Source of the DNA: Heterodontus francisci | Taxonomy: Eukaryota | Direction of reading: 5' to 3' | Length of the DNA: 64,000 nucleotides | Assembly (NCBI RefSeq): GCF_036365525.1 | Contig: NC_090404.1 | Span: 8,928,001-8,992,000, forward strand | Shown here: positions 1 through 39,901 of the stretch, piece by piece | Layout: each line of letters opens with the position of its first letter | How positions within the stretch are numbered: the first letter of the stretch is position 1 | Made by a program: the position numbers and the translations under genes | The notes under the pieces: model-generated | Databases searched by the model: none | What the model saw: the letters and a program-made list of their open reading frames with translations, nothing else | Told to the model about the DNA's origin: nothing

Positions 1-107
1 GCTGTTTTATTATTACTGTGGTTATGATTACAGTTATTGTTAGTGTTACTGTTGCCATTTTATTGTTTGGCTTTAGATACAATTGCTGTGTCATATTCAT
101 TCTCAGG

Positions 108-436
108 ATGTTCCGGATTTACAGACTCTCCTTGCTGTTTTACACTGTCTGTATGGATGCGGTCGGTGAAGAGGAGGTGATGCCTCTCCCTCCGCGGGTG
201 GTTGTCAGTGAAGCGAGAATTGTCTCCATGAATTGCTCCATTACCTTCCGTTTACTGTTCTACACTTTTACAGACAGCAACCTTATCAGCCCCTCCAGCA
301 TCTGGGGATGGCCACAAGCTCACTGATCAACACGGGAGGATCACTACTTCAATCGGGGGAGACTGCAAACGCAGTGCAGTGACTGTCAGAAAGGAGCGAG
401 TGACAGACACCGCCACCTTTCTCTGAGCTGTGAGGC
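108..436 (+). pseudogene. TCR V-alpha-like pseudogene, leader and V in one exon (copy 1)
   Basis: Allowing two frameshifts it reads MFRIYRLSLLFYTVCMDAVG-EEEVMPLPPRVVVSEARIVSMNCSITF..TVLHFYRQQPYQPLQHL..GRITTSIGGDCKRSAVTVRKERVTDTATFL*AVR. This shows the first Cys, YRQ, and the D(T/S)ATYLCAVR-type end with the Cys codon changed to TGA. CACAGTG follows immediately. Confidence 0.8.
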
Positions 437-482
437 CACAGTGTAACAAACAAATTACAAATTCAGAGTCGGTACAGGAACC
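437..482 (+). other. Defective 23-RSS (30-bp spacer)
   Basis: CACAGTG at 437-443, then 30 nt containing tandem ACAAATT-ACAAATT, then nonamer-like ACAGGAACC at 474-482. Removing one 7-mer gives a 23-nt spacer. Confidence 0.7.
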
Positions 483-958
483 CACAGAGTGGGAGAGCCG
501 CTCTTCTGTCTTTGAACTATTGATACTGTTGTAACAATCGATATCTATAGTGAATGAAATCAAAAATAGTAAATAGAGAGAGAGTGACACTGAGAGAGAG
601 AGAGAGATTTAAAGAAAGTGAGAAATAGAGTTGGAAACGCAAAGAGAGAAAATAGTAGTAAAAGCATGAAAGGAAGAATGAGAGAGAGAAACACTTTCCT
701 AATCCGTGTAGAGCAAATTAGGAAAATGAGAGGACTGAAATAAAAGAAACAACCAGAATGAAACACAAAGCTACAAGGTAAGAGAAAGCTATGAAGAAAT
801 GGATTCGGAAATTAAGTAATAGGCACTTTCCTTTCAACTCACTCATTTCCCTTTCTCCTATTTCCACAGTTGAATTGTCTGAAAAGCGTCTCCTCGTAAA
901 TGGCCGCTGGAAACTGACCAATAGATCAAATCACACTTTACTCTGCCCATTAACTGGA

Positions 959-2695
959 CATAGGAACATAAGAGGAGGAGCAGGCCATTCAGCCCATCAA
1001 GCCTGATCCGCAATTCAATATGATCATGGCTCATCATTCACTTCAAACCCTTTTCCCCCACCATATATATCTGTCAATCTCTACGTCCAACATACTCAAT
1101 GACTGAGCTTCCACAGTCCTCTGGGGTAGAGAATTCCAAAGATTCACAACCCTCTCCTCATCTTTGTTTTTTTTTTATTTAGAGATACAGCCCTGAAACA
1201 GGCCCTTCAGCCCACCGAGTCTGTGCCGACCATCAACCACCCATTTATACTAATCCTACACTAATCCCATATTCCTACCACATCCCCACCTGTCCCTATA
1301 TTCCCCTACCACCTACCTATACTAGGGGCAATTTATAAATGGCCAATTTACCTACCAACCTGCAAGTCTTTTGGCTTGTGGGAGGAAACCGGAGCACCCG
1401 AAGGAAACACACGCAGACACAGGGAGAACTTGCAAACTCCACACAGGCAGTACCCAGAATTGAACCCGGGTCGCTGGAGCTGTGAGGCTGCAGTGCTAAC
1501 CACTGCGCCACTGTGCCGCCCATCTCTGTCCTAAGTGTCTTCCCCCTTATTTTGAAATTGTGTCCCCTGGTTCTAGACTCCTCAACCAGGGGAAACATCT
1601 TACCTGCATCTACCCTGCCTATCCCTTTCAGTATTTTGTAGGTTTCAATGACATCACCTCTCATTCTTCGAAACTCTAGAGAATACAGGCCCAGTTTCCC
1701 CAATTGCTCTTCATAGGACAGTCCCGCCATCCTGGGAACAAGTCTGGTGAACCTTCATTGCACTCCCTCTATGGCAATAATATTCTTCCTCCGGTAAGGG
1801 GACCAAAACTGCACACAGTTCTCCAAATGCAGTCTAACCAAGGTTCTGTACAATTGAAGCAAAGCTTCACTTCTCCTGTGCTCAAATCCGCTTGTGATAA
1901 AGGCCTACATACCGTTAGCCTTCTTAATTACTTGCTGCACCTGCGTGTTCGCTTTCAGTGAATTATTGACAAGGACACCCAGGTCCCTTTGTACATCTAC
2001 ACTTTCTAATCTCTTATCATTGAACAAATACTCTGGACCTTTATTCCCATGCCAAAATGGATAACCTCACATTTTTCCACATTATTTTCCATTTGTAACG
2101 TTCTTGCCCACACACTAAGTTTGTCCAAATCCCCTTGAAGACGCTTTTCATTTTCCTCACAACACACATTCCCACCTAATTTTGTGTCATCTGCGAACTT
2201 GGAAATATTACATTTGGTCCCCACATCCAAATCATTGACATATATTGTGAACAGCTGGGGCCCAAATACTGATCCTTGTGGTACCCCACTAGTCACAGAC
2301 TGCCAATGCGAGTGTGATCCGTTTATTCCCACTCTCTGCTTTCTGCCTATTAACAATCCTGAATCCATGCCAGTATATAACCTCCTATCCCATGTGCTTT
2401 AATTTTGCTAACCACCTCCTGTGGGGACTTTATCAAAAGCCTTCTGAAAATCCAAGTATACTACGTCCACTACGTATCAATTCTGTCAGGAACATCCTCA
2501 AAAGCTCCAACAGTTTGGTCAAACATGATTTCCCATTCATAAATCCATGTTGACTATGCCCAATCAGATCATCATTATCCAAGTGTCCATTTATTACATT
2601 CTTAAGAATAGATTCTAAAATTTGCCCTACTGCTGATGCTGGGTTAACAGGTCTGTAGTTCCCTGTTTTCTCTCTCCCTCCCTTCGTAAATAGTC
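959..2695 (-). mobile_element. CR1 LINE, 5'-truncated and decayed
   Basis: Minus-strand ORF fragments SGVPQGSVFGP, KFADDTKLGG and NYRPV; CR1 3' tail at the left end. Confidence 0.9.
1166..1520 (-). mobile_element. tRNA-derived V-SINE (HE1-like) nested in CR1
   Basis: GGCGGCACAGTGGCGCAGTGGTTAGCAC head with A/B boxes, V-domain GGGTGCTCCGGTTTCCTCCCAC, LINE-type tail, approximate TSD CATCT(T/C)TGT. Confidence 0.9.
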
Positions 2696-3078
2696 TCACT
2701 GGGGCAAAAAAGAAACGCTCAACAACAACAGGTGAGGTCCACTTGCAGAATTAGATTAGTTTGCGAATTAAATTCGCATCTATAATTAAAAACAAGCTGT
2801 ATAAATACACCTGTGGAACCTGAACTGACTTTGTGTCTTTTGATGTCCTTTCTGTGCCTGTTCTTTCTCATCGCCTGTCTCCACGTTTTGCCCATCATAA
2901 TTTAAATTTCGTTCTTCCAGTTTTTAATTCAACAATATAAAATCTGCTTCTGCTCCGCATATTAATTTATAACAGATCCAATCCAGTTTCCCATAACCAG
3001 GAACTCGAAATAGGTCAGTGAATAAATACAGCATTGCTGAGACACTTTTCACCAGCAAATAAACACTTCTCAGAGGAT

Positions 3079-3092
3079 CCACCAGAGGGCGT
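3079..3092 (+). promoter_or_regulatory. CTCF-like motif
   Basis: CCACCAGAGGGCGT, a close match to the CTCF core CCACCAG(A/G)GGGCGC; conserved at 14905-14918. Confidence 0.5.
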
Positions 3093-3999
3093 CGAATCAT
3101 ACGCCGATCCATTTGTGGATCAAACCCCAGCCAGTGAGCGAAACCGTTGGAATAAATAGAACAATAGGTGAAATCAACATACCTCCATGGGATGGGAAGA
3201 TATATCAGGGCAATAACCATCACATGGAACCATCCATCTATCGAAGGATTGACTTCTGACGCTCAAAACCGAGAAGGATAAGTGAGTGGAAGGTGTGGAA
3301 CATGGCGAAAGCATATTAAAATGTGAATGACAGACACACCCTGAGATCTGAATTCTGAAGTTACTCACTATACCCTTAGTGGAGATCGGTGTTAAAGGAG
3401 CGAAAGACAAACCGAAACCGCCCGGATGTTGTTTCTTTTTCTGCTCCTTTTTTAATCTGGGTGAAAGTTATAAGGACAGTTTTTCATGTCCTGCTGGTGT
3501 TGGGTTCTTGTTATGAGAATCCGTCCTGCACCTCACCCTGGAGGTTTTGAACCCGCTCCCCGCGCTCTGCTCCCGCCACTTTCTTCCCATGAGAGGCAAA
3601 TTGCTAATGGAAAAGCATCGATTCGCCGCTCCTTCAATTTTCTCTCATCGCAAATCCAAAATCTGAAGATTATACATGTCTAATTTAAACATTATGGACA
3701 CAGAGAATGTCAGAATTCAACAGAAAGACTTGAAACAACATGTCAAATGGAAATTAGGGAAGAGGACAGTGTTGGAAACGCTGTTTAAATTACAGCGAGA
3801 GTTTATTCTTTATTTCTGTTCAGTTGTTTATTCAGTAACAGTTTCATCGTTCTAATATGACAGATCTATAAATCACTCTGGCAAAATACAGAATCATTGT
3901 TAGTTCACTAGTTAACTGATCGGTGAGGGAATGTACACTGGAGTCACGGTTACCAGTGTGCTGATGGTGAAGTAACGGGAATTTGAGAGGAAGAATTGA

Positions 4000-4671
4000 G
4001 ACATAGAGCAATACAAGCACAGAAACAGGCCCATCGGCCCATCGTGTCCATACCCATCAAGCACTTATCTATTCTAATCCCATTTTCCAGCACTTGGCCC
4101 GAAGCCTTGTATTATGGGGTTTCAAGTGCTCATCTAAATACTTCTTAAATGTTGTGAGGGTTCCTGCCTCTACCACCACTTCCGGCAGTGCGTTCCAGAT
4201 TCCAACCACCCTCTGGATGAAAACATTTTTCCTCAAATCCCCTCTAAACCTTCTGCCCCTTACCTTAAATCTATGCCCCCTGGTTATTGACAGCTCCGCT
4301 AGGGGAAAAAGCTTCTTCCTATCTACTCCGATCTATGTCCCTCATAATTTTGTATACCTCAATCAGGTCTCCCCTCAGCCTTCTCTGCTCTAAGGAAAAC
4401 AACCCTAGCCTATCCAGTCTCTCTTCATAGCTGAAATGCTCTAGCCCAGGCAACATCCTGGTGAATCTCCTCTGCACCCTCTCCAATGCAATCATATCCT
4501 TCCTGTGGTGTGGCGACCAGAACTGTACACAGTAGTCCAACTGTGGCCTAACTAGCGTTTTATACAGCTCCATCATAACGTCCTTGCTCTTAAATTCTTC
4601 GCCTCGGCTAATAAAGGCAAGTATCCCATATCCCTCCCTAAGCACCTTATCTACCTGTGCTTCTGCCTTCA
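4000..4671 (-). mobile_element. CR1 LINE 3' fragment
   Basis: ORF LYKTLVRPQLDYCVQFWSP...ERVQRRFTRM on the minus strand. Confidence 0.9.
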
Positions 4672-4696
4672 GTCACCACGCCAGAATAAACCAACC

Positions 4697-4956
4697 CCAT
4701 GAACAATCCCATGTTTCCTGTGACAATGACCAGACAAGGGTTTCAGTCCCCGCCCCACGTCTCTAACAGCGGAACCATTCCCCATATAAGGACAGTGACT
4801 GTAGCCCAGCTCGGGGTGTTTCCGTTCACTGACAGCCAGCTCACCACCTACCGCTCTCACAGCACCACTGGGGACACAAGGAAGTGAGATGAGAGAATCC
4901 TGAGACACGACAGCAGATTATTGAGGGTGGGGATTAGAACGGGTGTCTTCAAATAT
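4697..4956 (+). promoter_or_regulatory. V-segment upstream/promoter region; left arm of inverted repeat
   Basis: Lies immediately 5' of the leader ATG. Contains ETS-like AGGAAGTG and ends in TATA-like TTCAAATAT. It is the reverse complement of 5709-5968. Confidence 0.7.
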
Positions 4957-4988
4957 CCAACTCCCCTTTTACAGAGCTGACAGCGACA

Positions 4989-5453
4989 ATGCGGCTACTC
5001 AGCATCTGGGTTGTGTGGGGAGCATTTCTGACAGGTAATTGTGGATTAAACACATTTCATCTTTTCTCCCATTTCACAAACATGTTTTAAATCTGAATTT
5101 TAAACAGTCGTCAGTCTGACCTTGTCCTGTTTAAACTTGTTTTCAGATCCGAGTCATGGAGATTCTGTCACTCAGCTCCTGCCCTCAGATGTTAAGACAG
5201 AAGGAGAAGCGGTGACTTTAAGATGTACCTATGATACTACAATAAGCTTCTATTATTTATACTGGTACCGGCAACACCCAGATACACAGCCCGAGTTTAT
5301 ACTGTGGAAATACTCGAGCGGTGGTGAAGATAAAGCAGATTTTGCTAAAACCCGTTTCTCTGTTGAGCTCCAGAAAGCGACTAAATTCACCAGTTTAACC
5401 ATCTCGGGTCTGCAGCTGACTGACTCTGCCGTGTATTACTGCGCCTTCAGCCT
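4989..5453 (+). CDS. TRAV/DV: T-cell receptor V-alpha/delta gene segment (leader exon 4989-5034, intron 5035-5146, V exon 5147-5453), apparently intact
   Basis: Leader MRLLSIWVVWGAFLT, GT-AG phase-1 intron, then DSVTQ..VTLRCTYDTT..YLYWYRQ..RFSVELQKATKFTSLTISGLQLTDSAVYYCAF. Resembles TRAV38/TRDV1-type V domains and is followed by a 23-RSS. Confidence 0.95.
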
Positions 5454-5492
5454 CACAGTGATGGAAAGCAGTCTCACCCCTGTACAAAAACT
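5454..5492 (+). other. Recombination signal sequence, 23-bp spacer
   Basis: CACAGTG + 23 nt + ACAAAAACT. Confidence 0.97.
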
Positions 5493-5708
5493 GCCTTTGG
5501 ACTGTGGGTGGGAACTTCTGTCTGTTGGGAGGTGTGTCGAATCGCGGGCAGATGCAGCCACAATGTGCAGCGCGCTGTCAGGCTCTCAAAGACACACCGA
5601 GAGGAAACCAAATTAACCTCAGATCAAACTGTCACCCAACTGTTTCCAGGAGCGGCCGAGAAAACAAACTGCAGAATCCAGTCAGACAGACAGATCCAAC
5701 ACAGACAC

Positions 5709-5968
5709 ATATTTGAAGACACCCGTTCTAATCCCCACCCTCAATAATCTGCTGTCCTGTCTCAGGATTCTCTCACCTCACTTCCTTGTGTCCCCAGTGG
5801 TGATGTGAGACGGGTAGGTGGTGAGCTGGCTGTCAGTGAATGGAAACATCCCGAGCTGGGTTCCAGTCAGAGACCTGACAGGGGAATGGTTGCACATTTA
5901 GAGACCGGGGGTGGGAATGAAACCCTGGTCTGTTAATTATCACCAGCAAGATGGGGATTGTTGATGGT
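5709..5968 (-). repeat. Right arm of inverted repeat (inverted copy of V promoter region)
   Basis: ATATTTGAAGACACCCGTTCTAATCCCCACCCTCAATAATCTGCTGTC... is the reverse complement of the sequence ending at 4956. The inner ~140 bp is near-identical; the outer part is diverged. Confidence 0.95.
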
Positions 5969-6997
5969 GACAGAAAACATTCCAGCATTAAGGAGACACC
6001 CTGAAGCACAATGGACACAGGGGGAACTGTAATAGGAGCTTGTTTTAAAGATCACAGTCACCACCTTGTGAAATCTGCGCATTGTGTATAAACGGTCTCT
6101 GAATCAACAACACACTCTGATCAAATAAACCCTGTGAACAGGCTTCGGTCAAAGACTCCGGGAAACTGACAGGGGAGATGGGGAAAGAGCTGCTCAATAT
6201 TGCAGGCAGGCACGGAAAGGGCAGCAAAGTGCAAGAAGTAAATTACAACGTCACAAATGGATTTGTCAATTTCAGTTTTAGTGTAACTGCTCGTTTCAGG
6301 GCTTTGCAGAAAGACCAGGAGAATGAAACTGATTGGAAAGCTCTTTCAAAGAGCTAACTCGATGGGCCGAATGGCCTCCTCCTGTGCTGTCAGATTTCAT
6401 GATTTATAGAATTTCGATTGCCTCAGTCAAAACTTTCGGAATTATCCCCCTGAAGTTGCTATTTGCGATATTAGTATATGGAAGCTTCGCAGTAACAGTA
6501 TTAACCAATGTCATGGAGAAATTGTAAATAGAAAATGGCATCTTATCTTATTAAGGATTTTCGTAGCAGCTTGGCTAGAGTGACTGGACTCTGGTTTCAG
6601 CATCAGATTGTGGATTCCACCTCAACTTCAGAAGCTGTGTGTATTGACCAGGTTTCCAATCGGTGCAGTGCTGAAAGGACACGATCTTTCCGGTAAAATC
6701 TGAACGAATAATTCCTCCTCAACCCCTTGTCTGTTTAAGAACATAAGAAATAGGAGCAGGAGTAGGCCTTTGAGCCCCTCAAGCCTGCCCCGCCATTCAA
6801 TAAGATCATGGCTGATCTGTCGCAGGCCTCAACTCCTCTTTCAGGCCTGCTCTGCATAACCCTCAACTCCCCGAGATTTCAAAAATCTATCTACCTCCTC
6901 CTGAAATATATTTAGTGCCCTAGCCTCCAAAACTCTCTGAGGCAGAGAATTCCAGAGATTTACCACCTTCTGAGAGAAGAAATTCCTTCGCATCTCA

Positions 6998-8068
6998 GGG
7001 GCCCCTGTACATGTGGCCCCACCTGAAGGAGCAAGCGGAGCCTTGTTTGTGGTGGTGGAGCCTGGGACGCCCCTGGAGAACCTTTCCCATCTACTACTGG
7101 GTCAGGTTCCATGAGTGAAGGGGGGGTTGGTGGCGAGCCCTCTAAAGGCCGGCCCTCCCAGCCAAAATCCACTACCGATTAGGATGCACCCGACGCGGTT
7201 ATGGTTGAAAATGCTGCCCCGTCTGCTAGGCCTGTGGGCGCTGGTAGGGTGGGAGATTGCCTCCTCTCTCTGCCTCCAGTCTTGGTTTCGGCTGTATGTC
7301 TGGAGTCTGGAATTATCGTCTCCCCTGGGCTGCTCATTGGCTTGGGGACGGAGGTGGAGGGGCATCCTGAACCGCTGGCGCCCATTGTCTCCAGTTCCAC
7401 TCAAAAACCCAGTGAGGACTCCACCACCATGGATCCTGAGGGTGGGATCGTGATGGAGGCGGGACCAGCTGGCGAGGCCGGGACCTCCGCCCCACAGTGT
7501 GTTGTAGGTGTGTCGGCCGTTGGCAGTGATGACCCGGAGGAGGATGGGGACTTGGTGTGGGGCACGGAGGACGACCTTGAATCCATCACCAGTGAGACAG
7601 TGGACTCTGTCGTGCCTCCCACTGAGTCTCCTCTCATCCCCGCCATAGAACACCAGGAATTCTTCGCAGCATGCAGAGGTTGCCACAATAAAGTTCAGCT
7701 GGCCCTTGGCTGGTGGTCGAGTCTGGCACTAATCATCTAGTCTGTCTGTGCCACCTTCAGGAAGGCAGGTAGGGTGAGGGCATGAAACTGTTTGAGAGGC
7801 AATGGTTTAAAATGCTCCTCAATGGGTTGCTGGGGGAGTGTAAGGCGAGGTGTTCTTTCACTCCCTCATCACAATGAGGTATTGGTGATGGGATCAAATT
7901 ACTTTTGACATGAAGATAACCATAGCCAGCCTCAACATTAAGGGCAGCAGGGGGTCTCACCGCAGATTTCACAATCTCTCAGTTCTTGGGGAAGGGAGAT
8001 ATGCAGTGAGCTTTCTGAAGGAACCCCACACCGTTCTGGGAGACGAAGCCACCTGGCTCCTGGAGTGG
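6998..8068 (+). mobile_element. Tx1-clade (L1 group) retrotransposon fragment, ORF1 end and ORF2 endonuclease start
   Basis: MKITIASLNIKGSRG...YAVSFLKEPHT...WLLEW resembles the Tx1 ORF2 APE N-terminus. It abuts a minus-strand CR1 tail (6737-6997). Confidence 0.75.
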
Positions 8069-10730: not shown

Positions 10731-11551
10731 ACGCTTTTCCTACATTACACGAGTGACTATACCTCAAAGGAACCTCTGACTATAAAGCGATTTGGGATGT
10801 CCTGGTGTCGTGAAAGGCCCTATAAGAATGCAAGTCTTTCTTTATTTATTTGATTTATGTAACTCATTTCTCTAACATGCCAAACAGGGATTGAAACTCA
10901 ACAGATCAATGTGGGCAATCTAATCCCATAATCACAACAATCCTGTCCCTCTCTGTCTGGCATAGTTGTGTTATCTGTCACAGGCAGCAGGGGGCTTGAG
11001 ACTGCAGTTCTGGACTGCTCTGGCAAGCTGCATCGCGGGGCTTCACTTAAATACTTCAGGGGTTCAAGTTATTTCGCCCAGAGCAGTGTCCCAGAGATCA
11101 TTGATGGGCCGCATGGTCCCTGAGTCACTGGCTGTGGGTTGTCTGAATAAACAACAGGTTCAAAACAAAAGCCTGTAGATTTCATACCGTCTCTGAGCAC
11201 TGTCTGAAAGACATTCCCACAATGGACTGATACACAGGAGGGAATCAACACGGAATGGAGTAATGAGCATGCGCATATTCACTGATAGGCATCACCCCGA
11301 GAAACTAATAGCAAACCATCGGTCCGGTGCAGTGAAAACTCAAACACTGTGATGGAGCGCCATCAAGTGATGATGAGAGGGAACTGACAGCCACTTTGTC
11401 CCAATCCTGCGACAAGATTATACTGTTTACTGATTACTATTACTGCTGTTTTATTATTACTGTGGCTATGATTACAGTTATTGTTAGTGTTACTGTTGCC
11501 ATTTTATTGTTTGGCTTTAGATACAATTGCTGTGTTATATTCATTCTCAGG

Positions 11552-11880
11552 ATGTTCCGGATTTACAGACTCTCCTTGCTGTTTTACACTGTCTGTATGG
11601 ATGCGGTCGGTGAAGAGGAGGTGATGCCTCTCCCTCCGCGGGTGGTTGTCAGTGAAGCGAAAATTGTCTCCATGAACTGCTCCATTACCTTCCGTTTACT
11701 GTTCTACACTTTTACAGACAGCAACCTTATCAGCCCCTCCAGCATCTGGGGATGGCCACAAGCTCACTGATCAACACGGGAGGATCACTACTTCAATCGG
11801 GGGAGACTGCAAACGCAGTGCACTGACTGTCAGAAAGGAGCGAGTGACAGACACCGCCACCTTTCTCTGAGCTGTGAGGC
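11552..11880 (+). pseudogene. TCR V-alpha-like pseudogene, leader and V in one exon (copy 2); defective RSS at 11881-11926
   Basis: Same frameshifts, same TGA at the second Cys and same 30-nt RSS spacer as 108-482. Confidence 0.8.
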
Positions 11881-12400
11881 CACAGTGTAACAAACAAATT
11901 ACAAATTCAGAGTCGGTACAGGAACCCACAGAGTGGGAGAGCCGCTCTTCTGTCTTTGAACTATTGATACTGTTGGAACAATCGATATCTATAGTGAATG
12001 AAATCAAAAATAGTAAATAGAGAGAGAGTGACACTGAGAGAGAGAGAGATTTAAAGAAAGTGAGAAATAGAGTTGGAAACGCAAAGAGAGAAAATAGTAG
12101 TAAAAGCATGAAAGGAAGAATGAGAGAGAGAAACACTTTCCTAATCCGTGTAGAGCAAATTAGGAAAATGAGGAGACTGAAATAAAAGAAACAACCAGAA
12201 TGAAACACAAAGCTACAAGGTAAGAGAAAGCTATGAAGAAATGGATTCGGAAATTAAGTAATAGGCACTTTCCTTTCAACTCACTCATTTCCCTTTCTCC
12301 TATTTCCACAGTTGAATTGTCTGAAAAGCGTCTCCTCGTAAATGGCCGCTGGAAACTGACCAATAGATCAAATCACACTTTACTCTGCCCATTAACTGGA

Positions 12401-14468
12401 CATAGGAACATAAGAGGAGGAGCAGGCCATTCAGCCCATCAAGCCTGATCCGCAATTCAATATGATCATGGCTCATCATTCACTTCAAACCCTTTTCCCC
12501 ACCATATATATCTGTCAATCTCTACGTCCAACATACTCAATGACTGAGCTTCCACAGTCCTCTGGGGTAGAGAATTCCAAAGATTCACAACCCTCTGAGG
12601 AAAGAAATTTCTCCTCATCATTGTTTTGTTTTAGTTTTTGAGATACAGCACTGAAACAGGCCCCTTCAGCCCACCGAGTCTGTGCCGACCATCAACCACC
12701 CATTTATACTAATCCTACGCTAATCCCATATTCCTACCACATCCCCACCTGTCCCTATATTCCCCTACCACCTACCTATACTAGGGGCAATTTATAATGG
12801 CCAATTTACCTACCAACCTGCAAGTCTTTTGGCTTGTGGGAGGAAACCGGAGCACCCGAAGGAAACCCACGCAGACACAGGGAGAACTTGCAAACTCCAC
12901 ACAGGCAGTACCCAGAATTGAACCCGGGTCGCTGGAGCTGTGAGGCTGCGGTGCTAACCACTGCGCCACTGTGCCGCCCATCTCTGTCCTAAGTGTCTTC
13001 CCCCTTATTTTGAAATTGTGTCCCCTGGTTCTAGACTCCTCAACCAGGGGAAACATCTTACCTGCATCTACCCTGTCTATCCCTTTAAGTATTTTGTAGG
13101 TTTCAATGACATCACCTCTCATTCTTCGAAGCTCTAGAGAATACAGGCCCAGTTTCCCCAATTGCTCTTCATAGGACAGTCCCGCCATCCTGGGAACAAG
13201 TCTGGTGAACCTTCATTGCACTCCCTCTGTGGCAATAATATTCTTCCTCCGGTAAGGGGACCAAAACTGCACACAGTTCTCCAAATGCAGTCTAACCAAG
13301 GTTCTGTCCAATTGAAGCAAAGCTTCACTTCTCCTGTGCTCAAATCCTCTTGTGATAAAGGCCAACATACCGTTAGCCTTCTTAATTACTTGCTGCACCT
13401 GCGTGTTCGCTTTCAGTGAATTATTGACAAGGACACCCAGGTCCCTTTGTACATCTACACTTTCTAATCTCTTATCATTGAACAAATACTCTGGACCTTT
13501 ATTCCCATGCCAAAATGGATAACCTCACATTTTTCCACATTATTTTCCATTTGCAACGTTCTTGCCCACACACTAAGTTTGTCCAAATCCCCTTGAAGAC
13601 GCTTTTCATTTTCCTCACAACACACATTCCCACCTAATTTTGTGTCATCTGCGAACTTGGAAATATTACATTTGGTCCCCACATCCAAATCATTGATATA
13701 TATTGTTAACAGCTGGGGCCCAAATACTGATCCTTGTGGTACCCCACTAGTCACAGACTGCCAATGCGAGTGTGATCCGTTTATTCCCACTCTCTGCTTT
13801 CTGCCTATTAACAATCCTGAATCCATGCCAGTATATTACCTCCTATCCCATGTGCTTTAATTTTGCTAACCACCTCCTGTGGGGACTTTATCAAAAGCCT
13901 TCTAAAAATCCAAGTATACTACGTCCACTACGTATCAATTCTGTCAGGAACATCCTCAAAAGCTCCAACAGTTTGGTCAAACATGATTTCCCATTCATAA
14001 ATCCATGTTGACTATGCCCAATCAGATCATTATTATCCAAGTGTCCATTTATTACATTCTTTAGAATAGATTCTAAAATTTGCCCTACTGCTGATGCTGG
14101 GTTAACAGGTCTGTGGTTCCCTGTTTTCTCTCTCCCTCCCTTCGCAAATAGTGGGGTGACATTTGCGACCTTCCAATCTGCAGGAACCGTTCCAGAATCT
14201 GTAGTATTTTGGAAGATGATCACCAATGCATCCACTATCTCCATAGCGACCTCTTTCAACACTCTTTGATGTAGAATATCAGGTCCTGGGGACTTCTCAA
14301 CCTTCAGCCCCATTAATTTCTCCAATACAACCTTCTTGCTAATAGTAATTTCCTTCAATTCCTCATTGTCACTTGTCCCTTGGATCTCAAATTCTGGGAG
14401 ATTTCGTGTATCTGCCTCAGTGAAAACAGACTCAAAGTTATCATTTAGCTTCTCTGCCATTTCTCTAC
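12401..14468 (-). mobile_element. CR1 LINE with nested V-SINE (12622-12978)
   Basis: KSPGPD, WKVANVTPLF, QHGFMNGKSCLT, VPQGS and FADD motifs. Confidence 0.9.
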
Positions 14469-15834
14469 CAATAACCAGAAACAATAATTCAGTCTCCACA
14501 GCGAGAGACACAGGGAGAGTCTCACTGGGGCAATAAAGAAACGCTCAACAACAACAGGTGAGGTCCACTTGCAGAATTAGATTAGTTTGCGAATTAAATT
14601 CGCATCTATAATTAAAAACAAGCTGTATAAATACACCTGTGGAACCTGAACTGACTTTGTGTCTTTTGATGTCCTTTCTGTGCCTGTTCTTTCTCATCGC
14701 CTGTCTCCACGTTTTGCCCATCATAATTTAAATTTCGTTCTTCCAGTTTTTAATTCAACAATATAAAATCTGCTTCTGCTCCGCATATTAATTTATAACA
14801 GATCCAATCCAGTTTCCCATAACCAGGAACTCGAAATAGGTCAGTGAATAAATACAGCATTGCTGAGACACTTTTCACCAGCATATAAACACTTCTCAGA
14901 GGATCCACCAGAGGGCGTCGAATCATACGCCGATCCATTTGTGGATCAAACCCCAGCCAGTGAGCGAAACCGAGTCTCCGTTGGAATAAATAGAACAATA
15001 GGTGAAATCAACATACCTCCATGGGATGGGAAGATATATCAGGGCAATAACCATCACATGTAACCATCCATCTATCGAAGGATTGACTTCTGACGCTCAA
15101 AACCGAGAAGGATAAGTGAGTGGAAGGTGTGGAACATGGCGAAAGCATATTAAAATGTGAATGACAGACACACCCTGAGATCTGAATTCTGAAGTTACTC
15201 ACTATACCCTTAGTGGAGATCGGTGTTAAAGGAGCGAAAGACAAACCGAAACCGCCCGGATGTTGTTTCTTTTTCTGCTCCTTTTTTTAATCTGGGTGAA
15301 AGTTATAAGGACAGTTTTTCATGTCCTGCTGGTGTTGGGTTCTTGTTATGAGAATCCGTCCTGCACCTCACCCTGGAGGTTTTGAACCCGCTCCCCGCGC
15401 TCTGCTCCCGCCACTTTCTTCCCATGAGAGGCAAATTGCTAATAGAAAAGCATCGATTCGCCGCTCCTTCAATTTTCTCTCATCACAAATCCAAAATCTG
15501 AAGATTATACATGTCTAATTTAATCATTATGGACACAGAGAATGTCAGAATTCAACAGAAAGACTTTAAACAGCATGTCAAATGGAAATTAGGGAAGAGG
15601 ACAGTGTTGGAAACGCTGTTTAAATTACAGCGAGAGTTTATTCTTTATTTCTGTTCAGTTGTTTATTCAGTAACAGTTTCATCGTTCTAATATGACAGAT
15701 CTATAAATCACTCTGGCAAAATACAGAATCATTGTTAGTTCACTAGTTAACTGATCGGTGAGGGAATGTACACTGGAGTCACGGTTACCAGTGTGCTGAT
15801 GGTGAAGTAACGGGAATTTGAGAGGAAGAATTGA

Positions 15835-16501
15835 GACATAGAGCAATACAAGCACAGAAACAGGCCCATCGGCCCATCGTGTCCATACCCATCAAGCACT
15901 TATCTATTCTAATCCCATTTTCCAGCACTTGGCCCGAAGCCTTGTATTATGGGGTTTCAAGTGCTCATCTAAATACTTCTTAAATGTTGTGAGGGTTCCT
16001 GCCTCTACCACCACTTCCGGCAGTGCGTTCCAGATTCCAACCACCCTCTGGATGAAAACATTTTTCCTCAAATCCCCTCTAAACCTTCTGCCCCTTACCT
16101 TAAATCTATGCCCCCTGGTTATTGACAGCTCCGCTAGGGGAAAAAGCTTCTCCCTATCTACTCCGATCTATGTCTCTCATAATTTTGTATACCTCAATCA
16201 GGTCTCCACTCAGCCTTCTCTGCTCTAAGGAAAACAACCCTAGCCTATCCAGTCTCTCTTCATAGCTGAAATGCTCTAGCCCAGGCAACATCCTGGTGAA
16301 TCTCCTCTGCACCCTCTCCAATGCAATCACATCCTTCCTGTGGTGTGGCGACCAGAACTGTACACAGTAGTCCAACTGTGGCCGAACTAGCGTTTTATAC
16401 AGCTCCATCATAACGTCCTTGCTCTTAAATTCTACGCCTCGGCTAATAAAGGCAAGTATCCCATATCCCTCCCTAAGCACCTACCTGTGCTTCTGCCTTC
16501 A
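15835..16501 (-). mobile_element. CR1 LINE 3' fragment
   Basis: Duplicate of 4000-4671. Confidence 0.9.
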
Positions 16502-16526
16502 GTCACCACGCCAGAATAAACCAAAT

Positions 16527-16785
16527 CCATGAACAATCCCATGTTTCTGGTTACAATAACCAGACAAGGGTTTCTGTCCCCGCCCCACGTCTCTAACAGC
16601 GGAACCATTCACCATATAAGGACAGTGACTACAGGCCAGCTCGGGGTGTTTCCATTCACTGACAGCCAGCTCACCACCTACCACTCTCACAGCACCACTG
16701 GGGACACAAGGAAGTGAGGCGAGAGAATCCTGAGCAGGACAGCAGATTATTGAGGGTGGGGATTAGAACGGGTGTCTTCAAATAT
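16527..16785 (+). promoter_or_regulatory. V promoter region; left arm of inverted repeat (copy 2)
   Basis: Reverse complement of 17539-17798. Confidence 0.7.
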
Positions 16786-16817
16786 CCAACTCCCCTTTTA
16801 CAGAGCGGACAGCGACA

Positions 16818-17283
16818 ATGCGGCTACTCAGCATCTGGGTTGTGTGGGGAGCATTTCTGACAGGTAATTGTGGATTAAACACATTTCATCTTTTCTCCCA
16901 TTTCACAAACATGGTTTAAATCTGAATTTTAAACAGTCGTCAGTCTGATCTTTTCCTGTTTAAACATGTTTTTCAGATCGGAGTCATGGAGATTCTGTCA
17001 CTCAGCTCCTGCCCTCAGATGTTAAGACAGAAGGAGAAGCGGTGACTTTAAGCTGTACATATGATACTACATGGAGCGACTATTCTTTATACTGGTATCG
17101 ACAACACCCAGATACACAGCCCGAGTTTATACTGTGGAAACACTCAGGCGGTACTGAAGATAAAGCAGATTTTGCGAAAACCCGTTTCTCTGTTAAGCTC
17201 CAGAAAGCGACTAAATTCACCAGTTTAACCATCTCGGGTCTGCAGCTGACTGACTCTGCCGTGTATTACTGCGCTCTCAGACT
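16818..17283 (+). CDS. TRAV/DV: T-cell receptor V-alpha/delta gene segment (leader 16818-16863, intron 16864-16976, V exon 16977-17283), apparently intact
   Basis: Same structure as 4989-5453; VTLSCTYDTTWSDYSLYWYRQ...DSAVYYCALR. Confidence 0.95.
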
Positions 17284-17322
17284 CACAGTGATGGAAAGCA
17301 GTCTCACCCCTGTACAAAAACT
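17284..17322 (+). other. Recombination signal sequence, 23-bp spacer
   Basis: CACAGTG + 23 nt + ACAAAAACT. Confidence 0.97.
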
Positions 17323-17538
17323 GCCTTTGGACTGTGGGTGGGAGCTTCTGTCTGTTGGGAGGTGTGTAGAATCGCGGGCAGATGCAGCCACAATGTGCAG
17401 CGCGCTGTCAGGCACTCAAAGACACACCGAGAGGAAACCAAATTAACCTCAGATCAAACTGTCACCCAACTGTTTCCAGGAGCGGCCGAGAAAACAAACT
17501 GCAGAATCCAATCAGACAGACAGATCCAGCACTTACAC

Positions 17539-17798
17539 ATATTTGAAGACACCCGTTCTCATCCCCACCCTCAATAATCTGCTGTCCTGTCTCAGGATTC
17601 TCTCACCTCACTTCCTTGTGTCCCCAGTGGTGATGTGAGACGGGTAGGTGGTGAGCTGGCTGTCAGTGAATGGAAACATCCCGAGCTGGGTTCCAGTCAG
17701 AGACCTGACAGGGGAATTGTTGCACATTTAGAGACCGGGGGTGGGAATGAAACCCTGGTCTGTTAATTATCACCAGCAAGATGGGGATTGTTGATGGT
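17539..17798 (-). repeat. Right arm of inverted repeat (copy 2)
   Basis: Inverted copy of 16527-16785. Confidence 0.95.
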
Positions 17799-18828
17799 GA
17801 CAGAAAACATTCCAGCATTAAGGAGACACCCTGAAGCACAATGGACACAGGGGGAACTGTACTAGGAGCTTGTTTTAAAGATCACAGTCACCACCTTGTG
17901 AAATCTGTGCATTGTGTATAAACGGTCTCTGAATCAGCAACACACTCTGATCAAATAAACCCTGTGAACAGGCTTCGGTCAAAGACTCCGGGAAACTGAC
18001 AGGGGAGATGGGGAAAGAGCTGCTCAATATTGCAGGCAGGCACGGAAAGGGCAGCAAAGTGCAAGAAGTAAATTGCAGTGTCACAAATGGATTTGTCAAT
18101 TTCAGTTTTAGTGCAACTGCTCGTTCCAGGGCTTTGCAGAAAGACCAGGAGAATGAAACTGATTGGATAGCTCTTTCAAAGAGCTGACTCGATGGGCCGA
18201 ATGGCCTCCTCCTGTGCTGTCAGATTTCATGATTTATTGAATTTCGATTGCCTCAGTCAAAACTTTCGGAATTATCCCCCTGAAGTTGCTATTTGCGAAA
18301 TTAGTATATGGAAGCTTCGCAGTAACAGTATTAACCAATGTCATGGAGAAATTGTAAATAGAAAATGGCATCTTATCTTATTAGGGATTTTCGTAGCAGC
18401 TTGGCGAAAGTGACTTGACTCTGGTTTCAGCATCAGATTGTGGATTCCACCTCAACTTCAGAAGCTGTGTGTATTGACCAGGTTTCCAATCGGTGCAGTG
18501 CTGAAAAGACACGATCTTTCCGGTATAATCTGAAGCCAATAATTCCTCCTCAACCCCTTGTCTGTTTAAGAACATAAGAAATAGGAGCAGGAGTAGGCCA
18601 TTCAGCCCCTCGAGCCTGTCCAGCCATTCAATAAGATCATGGCTGATCTGTCGCAGGCCTCAACTCCTCTTTCAGGCCTGCTCTGCATAACCCTCAACTC
18701 CCCGAGATTTCAAAAATCTATCTACCTCCTCCTGAAATATATTTAGTTCCCTAGCCTCCAAAACTCTCTGAGGCAGAGAATTCCAGAGATTTACCACCTT
18801 CTGAGAGAAGAAACTCCTTCGCATCTCA

Positions 18829-20018
18829 AGGGCCCCTGTACATGTGGCCCCACCTGAAGGAGCAAGTGGAGCCCTGTTTGTGGCGGTGGAGCCTGGGACG
18901 CCCCTGGAGAACCTTTCCCATCTACTACTGGGTCAGGTGCCCTGAGTGAAGTGGGGGTTGGTGGCGAGCCCTCTAATGGCCGGCCCTCCCAGCCAAAATC
19001 CACTACCGATTAGGATGCACCCGACGCGGTTATGGTTGAAAATGCTGCCCCGTCTGCTAGGCCTGTGGGCGCTGGTAGGGTGGGAGATTGCCTCCTCTCT
19101 CTGCCTCCAGTCTCGGTTTCGGCTGTATGTCTGGAGTCTGGAATTATCGTCTCCCCTGGGCTGCTCATTGGCTTGGGGCCGGAGGTGGAGGGGCATTCTG
19201 AACCGCTGGCGCCCATTGTCTCCAGTTCCACTCAAAAACCCAGTGAGGACTCCACCACCATCGATCCTGAGGGTGGGATCGTGATGGAGGCGGGACCAGC
19301 TGGCGAGGCCAGAATGTCCGCCCCACAGTGTGTGGTAGGTGTGTCGGCCGCTGGCAGTGATGACCCGGAGGAGGATGGGGACTTGGTGTGGGGCACGGAG
19401 GACGACCTTGAATCCATCACCAGTGAGACAGTGGATTCTGTCGTGCCTCCCACTGAGTCTCCTCTCATCCCCGCCACAGAACACCAGGAATTCCTCGCAG
19501 CATGCAGAGGTTGCCACAATAAAGTTCAGCTGGCCCTTGGCTGGTGGTCGAGTCTGGCACGAATCATCCAGTCTGTCTGTGCCACCTTCAGGAAGGCAGG
19601 TAGGGTGAGGGCGTGAAACTGTTTGAGAGGCAATGGTTTAAAATGCTCCTCAATGGGTTGCTGGGGGAGTGTAAGGCGAGGTGTTCTTTCACTCCCTCAT
19701 CACAATGAGGTATTGGTGATGGGATCAAATTACTTTTGACATGAAGATAACCATAGCCAGCCTCAACATTAACGGCAGCAGGGGGTCTCACCGCAGATTT
19801 CACAATCTCTCAGTTCTTGGGGAAGGGAGATATGCAGTGAGCTTTCTGAAGGAACCCCACACCGTTCTGGGAGACGAAACCACCTGGCTCCTGGAGTGGC
19901 AGGGTGGGCCTACATGAGTCACCTCACCCCTAATTCTGGTGGGGTGGCCATCTTGTTGGCCCCGACCTTTTAGCCAGAGATCTTGGGCATCAAGGAGCTT
20001 ATGCCAGGCTGCTTGTTG
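18829..20018 (+). mobile_element. Tx1-clade retrotransposon fragment
   Basis: MKITIASLNINGSRG..., continuing ...SHLTPNSGGVAILLAPTF (APE domain). Confidence 0.75.
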
Positions 20019-23170: not shown

Positions 23171-24080
23171 TTATATAGTTCCTGCTAAACCTCCCTGCTC
23201 TTACATGCTATGTCTCGGCTAATAAAGGAAATGATTCCATACGCCTTTAGGGAAGGAAGTCTGCCATCCTTACCTGGTCTGGCCTACAGTTGTTTCCAGA
23301 CCCACGCAAATATTTCCACTGGTATTTAAAAAGGAAAAGAGTAATTAAGGTGAGTGTTGGTCCTGAGATTGTGGAGTTTGTAGCAGATAATAATGAAATG
23401 GCAGATGAAATGAACCAATATTTTGCTTCTGTCTTCAGTGTAGAGGACACAAAAACATTCCAGTAAAGCTATAAATCAGGAGGTGGAAGGAAGAGAGGAA
23501 CTCAATGAAAGTACAATCACCAGGGAAGCAGTACTGAGCAAACTGATGGAACTGTGGGCCGACAAGCCCACGGGTCCTGGTGGACTTCATCCAAGGGTCT
23601 AAAAAGAGGTGGCAAATAAGGTAGTAGAAGAGTTGGTCTTAATTTTTCATTCTCTGTTTGGCAGGTTAGAGCACTGAGTTCATTAAATCAAATAATTAAA
23701 GAAAGACTTGCATTCTTATAAAGCCTTTCACGACATCGGGACATCCCAAAGTGTTTTACAGCCAGAGGTTCCTCTGAATTGGTAGATTCTGGGAAGGTTC
23801 CATCAGAATGGAAAGTAGCAAATATAACTCCTCTATCCAAGAATGGAGGTGGGTTGCCGGCGTGTGGGGTGGGGGGGAGCGGGGGGAGTTGGGGGGGAGG
23901 TGGTGGAGGCAGAAATCAGGTAACTATAGGCCAGTTAGCTTGACGTCTGTCATGGGGGAGGTGTTAAAATCGATCATTAAGGAGGCTACAGCTGTGTACT
24001 TAGAAAACCCGAGGGAATCAGGAATAGTCAGCATGGTTTGTGAAAGGAAGTCATATTTAACCACTTTATTGGAGTTCTTT

Positions 24081-27000
24081 GAAATTGGAGGGAGGGGGAA
24101 GGAGAGTCAGTATGAAATTGGAGGGAGTGGGGGAAGGAGAGTCAGTATGAAATTGGAGTGAGGTGGAAGGAGTGTCAGTGTGAAATTGGTGGGAGGTGGA
24201 AGGAGTGTCAGTATGAAATTGGAGGGAGGGGGAAGGAGTGTCAGTATGAAATTGGAGGGAGGGGGAAGGAGTGTCAGTATGAAATTGGAGGGAGGGGGAA
24301 GGAGTGTCAGTATGAAATTGGAGGGAGGGGGAAGGAGAGTCAGTGTGAAATTGGAGGGAGGGGGAAGGAGTGTCAGTGTGAAATTGGAGGGAGGGGGAAG
24401 GAGTGTCAGTGTGAAATTGGTGGGAGGTGGAAGGAGAGTCAGTATGAAATTGGAGGGAGTGGGGGAAGGAGAGTCAGTATGAAATTGGAGGGAGTGGGGG
24501 AAGGAGTGTCAGTGTGAAATTGGAGGGAGGTGGAAGGAGTGTCAGTATGAAATTGGAGGGAGGGGAAGGAGTGTCAGTATGAAATTGGAGGGAGGGGGAA
24601 GGAGTGTCAGTATGAAATTGGAGGGAGTGGGGGAAGGAGTGTCAGTGTGAAATTGGTGGGAGGTGGAAGGAGTGTCAGTATGAAATTGGAGGGAGGAGGA
24701 AGGAGTGTCAGTATGAAATTGGAGGGAGTGGGGGAAGGAGTGTCAGTATGAAATTGGAGGGAGTGGGGGAAGGAGTGTCAGTATGAAATTGGTGGGAGGT
24801 GGAAGGAGAGTCAGTATGAAATTGGAGGGAGGTGGAAGGAGTGTCAGTATGAAATTGGAGGGAGGTGGAAGGAGTGTCAGTGTGAAATTGGTGGGAGGTG
24901 GAAGGAGAGTCAGTATGAAATTGGAGGGAGGTGGAAGGAGTGTCAGTATGAAATTGGAGGGAGGTGGAAGGAGTGTCAGTGTGAAATTGGTGGGAGGTGA
25001 AAGGAGAATCAGTATGAAATTGGAGGGAGGAGGAAGGAGTGTCAGTATGAAATTGGAGGGAGGAGGAAGGAGTGTCAGTATGAAATTGGAGGGAGGTGGA
25101 AGGAGTGTCAGTGTGAAATTGGTGGGAGGTGGAAGGAGTGTCAGTATGAAATTGGAGGGAGGGGGAAGGAGTGTCAGTATGAAATTGGAGGGAGGGGGAA
25201 GGAGTGTCAGTATGAAATTGGAGGGAGGGGGAAGGAGAGTCAGTATGAAATTGGAGTGAGGTGGAAGGAGTGTCAGTATGAAATTGGAGTGAGGTGGAAG
25301 GAGTGTCAGTGTGAAATTGGTGGGAGGTGGAAGGAGTGTCAGTATGAAATTGGAGGGAGGGGGAAGGAGTGTCAGTATGAAATTGGAGGGAGGGGGAAGG
25401 AGTGTCAGTATGAAATTGGAGGGAGTGGGTGAAGGAGTGTCAGTGTGAAATTGGAGGGAGGTGGAAGGAGTGTCAGTGTGAAATTGGTGGGAGGTGGAAG
25501 GAGAGTCAGTATGAAATTGGAGGGAGGTGGAAGGAGTGTCAGTATGAAATTGGAGGGAGGTGGAAGGAGTGTCAGTATGAAATTGGAGGGAGGGGGAAGG
25601 AGTGTCAGTATGAAATTGGAGGGAGGGGGAAGGAGTGTCAGTGTGAAATTGGAGGGAGGTGGAAGGAGTGTCAGTATGAAATTGGAGGGAGGTGGAAGGA
25701 GTGTCAGTATGAAATTGGAGGGAGGTGGAAGGAGAGTCAGTGTGAAATTGGTGGGAGGTGGAAGGAGTGTCAGTATGAAATTGGAGGGAGGGGGAAGGAG
25801 TGTCAGTATGAAATTGGAGGGAGGGGGAAGGAGTGTCAGTATGAAATTGGAGGGAGGGGGAAGGAGTGTCAGTATGAAATTGGAGGGAGGGGGAAGGAGT
25901 GTCAGTATGAAATTGGAGGGAGGAGGAAGGAGTGTCAGTGTGAAATTGGAGGGAGGTGGAAGGAGTGTCAGTATGAAATTGGAGGGAGGTGGAAGGAGTG
26001 TCAGTATGAAATTGGAGGGAGGTGGAAGGAGAGTCAGTGTGAAATTGGTGGGAGGTGGAAGGAGTGTCAGTATGAAATTGGAGGGAGGGGGAAGGAGTGT
26101 CAGTATGAAATTGGAGGGAGGGGGAAGGAGTGTCAGTATGAAATTGGAGGGAGGGGGAAGGAGAGTCAGTATGAAATTGGAGTGAGGTGGAAGGAGTGTC
26201 AGTATGAAATTGGAGGGAGTGGGTGAAGGAGTGTCAGTGTGAAATTGGAGGGAGGTGGAAGGAGTGTCAGTGTGAAATTGGTGGGAGGTGGAAGGAGAGT
26301 CAGTATGAAATTGGAGGGAGGTGGAAGGAGTGTCAGTATGAAATTGGAGGGAGGTGGAAGGAGTGTCAGTATGAAATTGGAGGGAGGGGGAAGGAGTGTC
26401 AGTATGAAATTGGAGGGAGGGGGAAGGAGTGTCAGTGTGAAATTGGAGTGAGGTGGAAGGAGTGTCAGTATGAAATTGGAGGGAGGTGGAAGGAGTGTCA
26501 GTATGAAATTGGAGGGAGGTGGAAGGAGAGTCAGTATGAAATTGGAGGGAGTGGGGGAAGGAGTGTCAGTGTGAAATTGGAGGGAGGTGGAAGGAGAGTC
26601 AGTATGAAATTGGAGGGAGGTGGAAGGAGAGTCAGTATGAAATTGGAGGGAGGGGGAAGGAGAGTCAGTATGAAATTGGAGGGAGGGGGAAGGAGTGTCA
26701 GTATGAAATTGGAGGGAGGGGGTAGGAGAGTCAGTATGAAATTGGAGTGAGGTGGAAGGAGTGTCAGTATGAAATTGGAGGGAGTGGGTGAAGGAGTGTC
26801 AGTGTGAAATTGGAGGGAGGTGGAAGGAGTGTCAGTGTGAAATTGGTGGGAGGTGGAAGGAGAGTCAGTATGAAATTGGAGGGAGGTGGAAGGAGTGTCA
26901 GTATGAAATTGGAGGGAGGTGGAAGGAGTGTCAGTATGAAATTGGAGGGAGGGGGAAGGAGTGTCAGTATGAAATTGGAGGGAGGGGGAAGGAGTGTCAG

Positions 27001-30840: not shown

Positions 30841-31296
30841 AAAATCACAATACAACAGACTGGGGAAGCTGGTATTAAAATAATATCTGGGTACACGGAG
30901 TTAGGTTGCAGATCAGCCATGATCTCATTGAATGGCAGAACAGGCTCGAGGGGCTAAATGGCCGATTCCTGTTCCTATGTCCCAAATAAACTTGGACTCA
31001 AACACAGCTGATGAATGGGAAGTCATGGGAGAACTGGGGAGAAGGCAGTGCAACAGGAAATCAGCATTTGGACAGAGTTAGAGAGTTGAGGAAGTCTGGG
31101 GAGAGAGTACATTGGCACTAGAGGAGGCCATTCAGTCCATCAAGCCTGATGCACCATCCAATTAGATCCTGCCTGATCAATTAATCTCACCTCCTGTGAC
31201 ATTTATCCACAATATTAGCCCTATAAAATGGCTTGGCATTTATCAACAGAAACAAACCTCAACTTTCAGAATGAGCAGGTTCAGTTCTGGATGTGA

Positions 31297-32259: not shown

Positions 32260-32458
32260 TCAGGTGTGTGCACGTGTGGCTCAGTGTTTTTCCAGTCACA
32301 CGGATGTTTGAAAGCTTTTCCCACAGACTGACCAAACATTTCTCCTTCCACATTCAAAGGCTGAAGATAGTCAAGTCCTAATGAATCGAATAACTGTCAG
32401 ATCTTGACGTGATGTTTGATTTGAATTTCTTAACGGCAAAATATTCCCTTCCAATCCC

Positions 32459-39375: not shown

Positions 39376-39901
39376 GTGGGAAAAGCTTTCAAACATCAGT
39401 GTGACTGGAAACGCACTGAGACAGACACACCTGAGTGTTGCAGTGCACTGACTGAAAAAACATCGCACCATTCACAGCGGGGAGAAACTGTACATGTGTT
39501 CTCTGTGTGGCCGAGGTTTCAACTGATCATCCAACCTGGAGAGACACAAGGACACTCGCACAACGGAGAAACCGTGGAAATGTGTGGACGGGGGGAAGGG
39601 ATTCAGTTGACCGTCTGAATTGGAAACTCATCAGTGCAGTCACACTGGGGAGAGGCCGTTCACCTGCTCCGTGTGTGAGAAGGGATTCACTGAATCATTC
39701 CAGCTTGTGACACACCAGCGTGTTCACACTGGGGAGAGACCGTTCACCTGCTCAGTGTGTGAGAAGGGGTTTAATCAATCAACCAACCTTCTGACACACC
39801 AGTGAATCCACATCGGGGAGAGGCCGTTCACCTGCTCTGTACGTGGGAAGGGATTTACTCAGTCATCTCACCTGCTGAGACACCAGCGAGTTCACAAGTG
39901 A
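39376..39901 (+). pseudogene. C2H2 zinc-finger pseudogene
   Basis: [16 protein letters not shown] repeats, an in-frame TGA at 39803 and frameshifts. Confidence 0.85.

Follow-up and report, generated by a model that had tools for sequence, protein, structure and literature searches.

Inverted copies of their own 5′ region flank the V segments of one TCR alpha/delta-type subfamily in the shark Heterodontus francisci and may be a neutral relic of inverted duplication

Genomic palindromes, such as those of the sex chromosomes, are a known class of inverted repeats whose arms are partly kept alike by arm-to-arm gene conversion. Inverted orientation is also familiar among antigen-receptor genes, since the mammalian TCR beta and delta loci carry inverted V segments downstream of C. 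A third system concerns elements that accompany individual V segments. In the mouse VH8 family, the RSS is followed directly by V8E, a conserved element of about 200 bp that carries open chromatin and joins PAIR4 in enhancing VH recombination (PMC10390877; Hill et al., 2023). V8E elements were defined by open chromatin, active histone marks and genetic tests (PMC10390877), and the PAIR elements of mouse Igh are described there as giving rise to lncRNAs (Ebert et al., 2011, as cited in PMC10390877). A V segment enclosed between its promoter and an inverted copy of that promoter is a different arrangement, for which no description was found in a full-text literature search whose coverage leaves out most subscription journals. 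The arrangement reported here is real and apparently undescribed.

The locus lies in a stretch of 64,000 nucleotides (the window; contig NC_090404.1) that contains two V exons by tblastn and four copies of a 260-nt arm, all of them at V segments (Table 1). The left arm is the 5′ region of the V segment itself. As the original prediction held, it recurs in reverse orientation 216 bp past the RSS: a blastn search of the window with 4697-4956 matches 5967-5709 at 87.0% over 261 columns (E 3e-86), and the two arms enclose an insert of 752 nt. Two other matches, 16527-16785 (94.2%) and 17797-17539 (86.2%), make up the second arrangement that had been predicted, and beyond these four no arm copy is found in the window at E<=1e-3. 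A repeat search recovers the same layout, with a 176-nt inverted core at 91% in unit 1 and a matching pair in unit 2. The claim that each intact V segment is so enclosed holds for both V segments of the window, but the two amount to one independent case because both lie within one recent tandem duplication: positions 1-8068 and 11445-19899 are tandem copies that are 97.5-98% identical, with a unit length of 11.83 kb and the V cassettes at the equal place in both. The arm length of 260 nt is a minimum, since at its outer edge the left arm borders directly on a high-copy repeat.

Table 1. Features of the two V units, with the divergence of unit 1 from unit 2 and the ratio of RNA to DNA contig depth where available
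Feature	Position	Strand	Divergence between units	RNA/DNA depth ratio	Description and evidence
High-copy dispersed repeat	4000..4695	.			adjoins outer edge of left arm; depth 6e5-2e6; several copies in window
Upstream flank			0.95%		
Left arm	4697..4956	+	5.8%		V's own 5′ region (distal promoter and part of 5′UTR); blastn, four-arm alignment
Left outer part	4697-4804	+			carries CATATAAGG (TATAA 4785-4789)
Left inner part	4805-4956	+			ETS-like AGGAAGTG at 4871-4878; ends in TTCAAATAT
Leader exon	4989..5034	+		2.6	start MRLLSIWVVWGAFLT; ATG at 4989; sequence reading and spliced RNA joint
Leader intron	5035..5146	+		0.04	112 nt, GT..AG; RNA joint table
V exon	5147..5453	+	6.8%	4.5-7.8	intact, TCR alpha/delta type; translation, Pfam, PDB matches
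23-RSS	5454..5492	+	0 differences in 38 nt		CACAGTG, 23-nt spacer, ACAAAAACT; read from sequence
RSS-to-right-arm spacer	5493..5708	.	3.2%	0.13-0.29	216 nt
Right arm	5709..5968	-	0.77%		inverted copy of left arm; inner part 5709-5860, outer part 5861-5968
Downstream flank			2.5%		
Beyond right arm				0.2-0.6	
Unit 2 left arm	16527..16785	+			tandem duplicate, offset 11,830
Unit 2 V exon and 23-RSS	16977..17322	+			V intact, 90% protein identity to unit 1
Unit 2 right arm	17539..17798	-			2/260 positions differ from unit 1 right arm

The enclosed segment has all the parts of a complete V segment. Unit 1 shows the split-leader layout of a leader exon, a short intron and a V exon, and the leader ATG follows the end of the left arm after a gap of 32 nt. 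The leader is joined to the V exon by a splice at 5034>5147 (reported as 5031>5144, the cut being shifted by +3 to GT..AG) with a depth of 588 in RNA run X5. The V exon carries a V-set domain (Pfam E 3e-17), and its translation contains the Cys...WYRQ...YYC framework. Its best single-domain PDB matches are TCR alpha chains and Vdelta1 at E about 5e-19, with multi-domain antibody scFv chains ranking higher by summed score, and the closest proteins are bamboo-shark Ig-like proteins at 69% identity. Each V has a perfect CTCF core 1.9 kb upstream (at 3079 and 14905), and no CTCF site was found in the spacer between RSS and right arm. Within this spacer, the sub-stretch 5566-5652 is two to three times deeper than its neighbours in every DNA run.

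When the four arms (L1 and R1 of unit 1, L2 and R2 of unit 2) are aligned together, the likeness between left and right changes abruptly along their length. Left-right identity is 73-74% in the outer part (4697-4804) and 95% in the inner part (4805-4956), and of the fixed differences between left and right arms, 22 fall in the outer 108 nt, whereas the inner 152 nt have three and a further complex site. This step, which had been noticed beforehand as a near-identical inner and a diverged outer arm, is significant (Fisher p 3e-6), with its boundary near 4805-4816. At the other end, the homology of the arms stops abruptly, right after TTCAAATAT, and the ETS-like AGGAAGTG is retained in all four arms. 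Judged by divergence, the outer parts of the arms are an estimated five times older than the inner parts, which suggests an old inverted duplication whose inner part was later re-copied, probably by gene conversion.

The same alignment bears on when such re-copying would have occurred. Over the whole arm, identities are 86.6% for L1-R1, 85.8% for L1-R2, 86.2% for L2-R1 and 85.4% for L2-R2, so that in neither unit are the arms nearer to each other than to those of the other unit. In the inner part, L1-L2, L1-R and L2-R are tied at 95.4% (the left-right combinations span 94.7-95.4%) and R1-R2 reaches 99.3%. The three-way tie places the common ancestor of the right inner part and the left arms at about the depth of the V1/V2 split, and since arms of one unit show no special closeness, conversion has not continued since the units separated. 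The proposal that the arms are kept homogeneous by conversion thus survives in part: conversion fits the sharp step (22 against 3-4 fixed differences), but it is not an ongoing process. Constraint is a poor explanation of the left-right similarity, because the left inner part is not slow-evolving; it differs between units at seven of 152 positions (4.6%), compared with 4.5% in the intron and 7.4% in the outer part.

These observations are most readily brought together if the right arm is a neutral relic of inverted duplication, confined to one V subfamily and bearing one past conversion tract, an account to which we give slightly better than even weight. Under it, the 5′ region of the V would have undergone a small inverted duplication, and the copy would have come to lie directly beyond the 23-RSS, tail-to-tail with the V. 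It would be a single event in the ancestry of one TCR alpha/delta-type V subfamily, and later multiplication of the 11.8-kb unit would have carried the structure along. The outer 108 nt, about 26% diverged, would still date from the first duplication, and the inner 152 nt, about 5% diverged, would be the product of a much later copying from arm to arm. A single gene-conversion tract extending as far as the inner homology breakpoint is the most likely cause; it would be about as old as the split of the V1 and V2 lineages, after which the arms would have drifted independently. No dedicated job for the right arm would be needed, as relics of this kind may be made by inverted duplication and conversion without selection. 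A template switch by fold-back could have founded the structure, as could a convergent partner V that lost its leader, V and RSS. Another close inverted repeat, this one without a V, is present in the same 64 kb at 51535-51956 and 52860-53269, which indicates that such structures form here by ordinary processes.

The second of these founding events can also be taken as a full explanation, in which a convergent partner V once stood tail-to-tail with the present one, and the deletion of its leader, V exon and RSS left the right arm as a stump. We consider this improbable. It would, with the same low probability, reduce the identity step to the usual pattern among V paralogs, conserved in the proximal 5′ region and free in the distal one, with no arm-to-arm conversion at all. 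The inner arm and the leader are indeed far more widely shared than the outer arm in the runs of other organisms (depth 682-2814 as against 40-166). However, the left inner part is not slow-evolving between the units, and some 500 nt would have to be lost cleanly from a point exactly 32 nt ahead of the start codon. Nor does the 216-nt spacer hold a detectable leader, V or facing RSS. Local alignment of the spacer against the region from 5′UTR to RSS, under three scoring schemes, gave nothing significant for a leader or V remnant (z 0.7-2.5 against shuffles), in agreement with the prediction that neither follows the inverted arm. A match of the spacer to the start-codon region seen by eye was dropped as not significant.

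The copy level of the arm was assessed in Logan contigs of four runs, aligned to 4000-6600 at 80% likeness, one of which (X1) is DNA of the source sample. Summed depth in X1 is 100-308 over the arms, 146-564 over the V exon and 45-150 over plain flank, and typical positions across the whole unit are covered by about 4-11 distinct contigs each. It reaches 6e5-2e6 over 4000-4695, thousands of times above the arm, and 5.8e4 in the bin 6349-6435, which holds a short repeat motif at about 6357-6398. Because its contig depth equals that of the V exon, the arm is V-family sequence and no dispersed repeat or transposon. It had been allowed at the outset that the arm might be a common dispersed repeat unrelated to V genes; a depth equal to that of the V exon and four copies in 64 kb speak otherwise.

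A pair of 260-nt inverted arms around a 752-nt insert, with a high-copy repeat adjoining the left arm, does recall a fold-back or MITE-like element, with terminal inverted repeats and a captured V inside, a scenario that we find scarcely credible. The copy level is that of the V family and not that of a dispersed repeat, and all four arm copies in the 64 kb stand at V segments. No target-site duplication is seen at 4697 and 5968, as the flanks share no direct repeat there (a test weakened by the other repeat that adjoins the left edge), and the arm has no Rfam match. Past the outer ends of the arms, the sole match (3981-4109 with 6296-6431) comes down to 30 nt, a motif of a common repeat that turns up in many places and in both orientations. 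The second, outer inverted pair at 4016-4047 and 6357-6388 is this motif too. A transposon origin was rejected on the copy level, the missing target-site duplication and the lack of an Rfam match.

The contigs also bear on the age of the layout. Diverged paralogous contigs, about 81-85% and 89% identical, bridge both the junction between spacer and right arm and the outer junction of the right arm; the layout is therefore older than the local duplicate and no assembly artefact. Runs of two other organisms match the V, the spacer, the right arm and the sequence past it at 80% likeness or more, with no bridging contig seen, and in these runs the inner arm and leader region again stands out over the outer arm. 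The inverted-arm layout is a trait of one V subfamily and not of V segments generally. The persistence of the layout in contigs only about 81-85% identical, and the at least 80% likeness across spacer, right arm and beyond in two other organisms, both count against a neutral relic.

The right arm might be a working, family-specific regulatory element past the RSS, either an orientation-independent enhancer or an antisense promoter, that was copied from the V segment's own promoter; we think this unlikely, although it is the most plausible of the alternatives. Such an element would, again with rather low probability, open the chromatin of the RSS before rearrangement and then be lost when V and J join by deletion. 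The ETS-like AGGAAGTG and a proximal 150 nt that is 95-100% identical in both units fit this idea, as does the junction, which persists in paralogs that have diverged by about 16-19% and, probably, in two further organisms. A family-specific block is kept just downstream of the RSS in both units and in the diverged paralogous contigs, and the mouse VH8 V8E/PAIR4 module offers a mammalian precedent (PMC10390877). On the other side, the arm is confined to one V subfamily and TATAA has been lost in the right arms. An extended version of the idea, to which we attach less weight still, would have a shark V subfamily recycle an inverted copy of its promoter and 5′UTR as a private element on the RSS side, which as enhancer or antisense promoter would make the RSS accessible in precursor thymocytes, be discarded on joining and be renewed by conversion from the real promoter, making it an independent counterpart of the mouse VH8 V8E/PAIR module.

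Divergence between the units bears on these functional readings. Since the units split, the right arms have accumulated two changes and the left arms 15 (p 0.002), a difference that favours a regulatory element and counts against a neutral relic. The imbalance is explained, however, by a left arm and V block that is unusually fast (5.5-6.8%) and not by a slow right arm. The upstream flank is as well conserved between the units (0.95%) as the right arm, the right arms show no significant excess conservation relative to the flanks (2/260 against 18/716, p 0.12, a comparison of low power), and 260-nt windows with two or fewer changes make up 24% of all such windows. The V exon itself differs between units by a synonymous proportion of 9.1% and a non-synonymous proportion of 6.2%. 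The left arm and the V make up an older or separately converted block set in younger flanks.

Transcription was examined in run X5, which was treated as RNA because it contains the spliced joint and is depleted of the intron; its contigs are unstranded and its tissue is unspecified. RNA depth is about 10 in the leader intron as against 633-2218 in the exons. Over the left arm it climbs from 28 (4751-61) through 49 (4768), 124 (4824) and 293 (4870-4956) to 653 (4978) with DNA depth flat, a stepwise rise that identifies part of the left inner arm as 5′UTR. Coverage by RNA contigs already extends upstream of TTCAAATAT, which is therefore probably no TATA box. The original reading of the arm signals therefore stands for the ETS-like AGGAAGTG and for the exact end of homology after TTCAAATAT, and not for TTCAAATAT as a TATA-like element. 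The only canonical TATAA of the left arm is the one in its outer part, and both right arms have lost it.

Past the RSS the picture is different. RNA depth between RSS and right arm is 28-80 (27.6 in 5479-5565), which is background, and the unstranded X5 contigs give no sign of transcripts running from the right arm toward the RSS or of sense read-through from the V into the right arm. The V RNA in X5 probably comes mostly from rearranged genes, which already lack the right arm. As weak evidence, the X5 data thus offer no support for an antisense promoter, and they cannot reveal an antisense transcript of precursor thymocytes. The dedicated antisense promoter that was first proposed does not find backing in the RNA depth, the conservation of the right arms or their TATAA.

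The arms might instead act by pairing. A read-through germline transcript could fold a stem of about 137 bp around the V and so mark unrearranged transcripts, or the V cassette could flip; either is very unlikely. The predicted fold of 4815-5870 does pair 137 of its first 142 nt with the right arm, and the inner-arm duplex has a computed energy of -303 kcal/mol. However, the read-through on which such a stem depends is not seen, as RNA depth falls to background right after the RSS. Flipping fares no better, since arms that are 87% alike are poor recombination substrates and no inverted form occurs among the joints listed for the source sample. The sole joint between opposite strands at the arms (organism C, 4862 to 5792, among the joints listed) links equivalent positions and fits a mosaic arm. 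For the invertible V cassette suggested earlier, no flipped form stands among the best-supported joints listed.

The neutral relic is favoured because the right arm lacks significant conservation, has lost TATAA and lies in a stretch with RNA at background, and because an inverted repeat without a V is found nearby. Beside the points already set against it, the ETS-like site has stayed almost unchanged in the right arm, as have the final 60 nt of the 5′ region, and from its sequence the arm could still start transcription. If the right arm is active, it would provide a simple, sequence-defined handle on per-V RAG accessibility in the oldest jawed-vertebrate lineage, and V-private elements past the RSS, known so far from mouse VH8, would have arisen more than once. 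If it is a relic, which is more likely, it would serve as a marker of one V subfamily and as the record of a dated conversion event, and it would show the mosaic history of a tandem V array in which flanks are 1-2.5% and the V block 5.5-7% diverged.

Set beside the known systems, the shark structure shares a different property with each. With the V8E/PAIR system it has in common a family-specific block just past the RSS of the V that would be lost on deletional joining. V8E, however, is not a copy of the V segment's own promoter, whereas the shark arm is an inverted 5′ region that starts 216 nt after the RSS; the shark arm is known from sequence and contig depth, with no RNA signal or significant excess conservation. 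Like convergent or inverted V segments, it has V-type 5′ regions that face each other across the RSS side of a V, but the shark site comes without a second leader, V exon or RSS and holds only the 5′ region of the would-be partner. The likeness to genomic palindromes lies in two inverted arms, a short spacer and a tract of much higher arm-to-arm identity. The shark structure differs from these in being tiny (260-nt arms, 752-nt spacer), in what would be a single past conversion, and in having a complete V segment with its RSS as the spacer. By its structure, it is best placed among small inverted duplications that gene conversion has shaped.

The two tandem V units, each carrying one TCR alpha/delta-type V segment, appear to have a mosaic history. 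In a unit-to-unit comparison, the block formed by the left arm (the V segment's own 5′ region) and the V segment is 5.5-6.8% diverged (4697-5453 versus 16527-17283), with a synonymous divergence of 9.1% for the V exon, whereas the flanks of the block differ by only 0.95-2.5% and the RSS shows no differences. This disparity suggests either that the flanks were homogenised or that a third paralog served as conversion donor for the V block. The amino acid differences between the two V segments are concentrated in CDR1, CDR2 and the V end.

Positions 5566-5652, part of the spacer between the RSS and the right (inverted) arm, reach two to three times the contig depth of adjacent sequence in all three DNA runs, two of which are from other organisms. 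This stretch is therefore common to more V units than the remaining spacer; candidate explanations are a conserved element downstream of the RSS and a small repeat.

Further features of the window are given in the table. A 32-nt inverted pair around the cassette (4016-4047 / 6357-6388) was considered as a second pair of arms and rejected, being a motif of the abundant dispersed repeat. The reverse-transcriptase fragment lies within the duplicated unit, 5′ of V. Each unit also contains one CTCF core, approximately 1.9 kb 5′ of the V leader; the three cores found in the whole window are not above the 2.2 expected by chance.

Features in and around the tandem V units
Feature	Position	Strand	Details
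LINE-type reverse-transcriptase fragment	2006-2368	-	Pfam RVT_1, 2e-11
Perfect CTCF core CCACCAGAGGGCG	3079-3091 and 14905-14917	+	
Dispersed repeat, extremely abundant	4000-4695		Contig depth 6e5-2e6, all three organisms
Dispersed repeat, extremely abundant	6357-6390		Contig depth 6e4, all three organisms
4.5-kb satellite	24080-28587		136 copies of 33-nt purine/G-rich unit, 93% matches
C2H2 zinc-finger arrays	31276-33108 and 38608-40930		Seeming 84-nt tandem repeats
Second close inverted repeat	51535-51956 / 52860-53269		420-nt arms, 85-92% identity, 903 nt in between
C2H2 zinc-finger array	53590-54324	-	Seeming 84-nt tandem repeat; Pfam zf-C2H2, 2e-59

The second close inverted repeat has no relation to V genes. 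It adjoins LINE reverse-transcriptase fragments (49961-50860, 51069-51374), and a third copy of its arm is found at 59132-59619. The satellite, with a GC skew of approximately 0.87, lies just 3′ of the second V unit. Since the apparent 84-nt repeats are C2H2 zinc-finger arrays, with nine fingers within one ORF (Pfam zf-C2H2), the V units are adjoined by ZNF gene copies, KRAB-less or KRAB-type.
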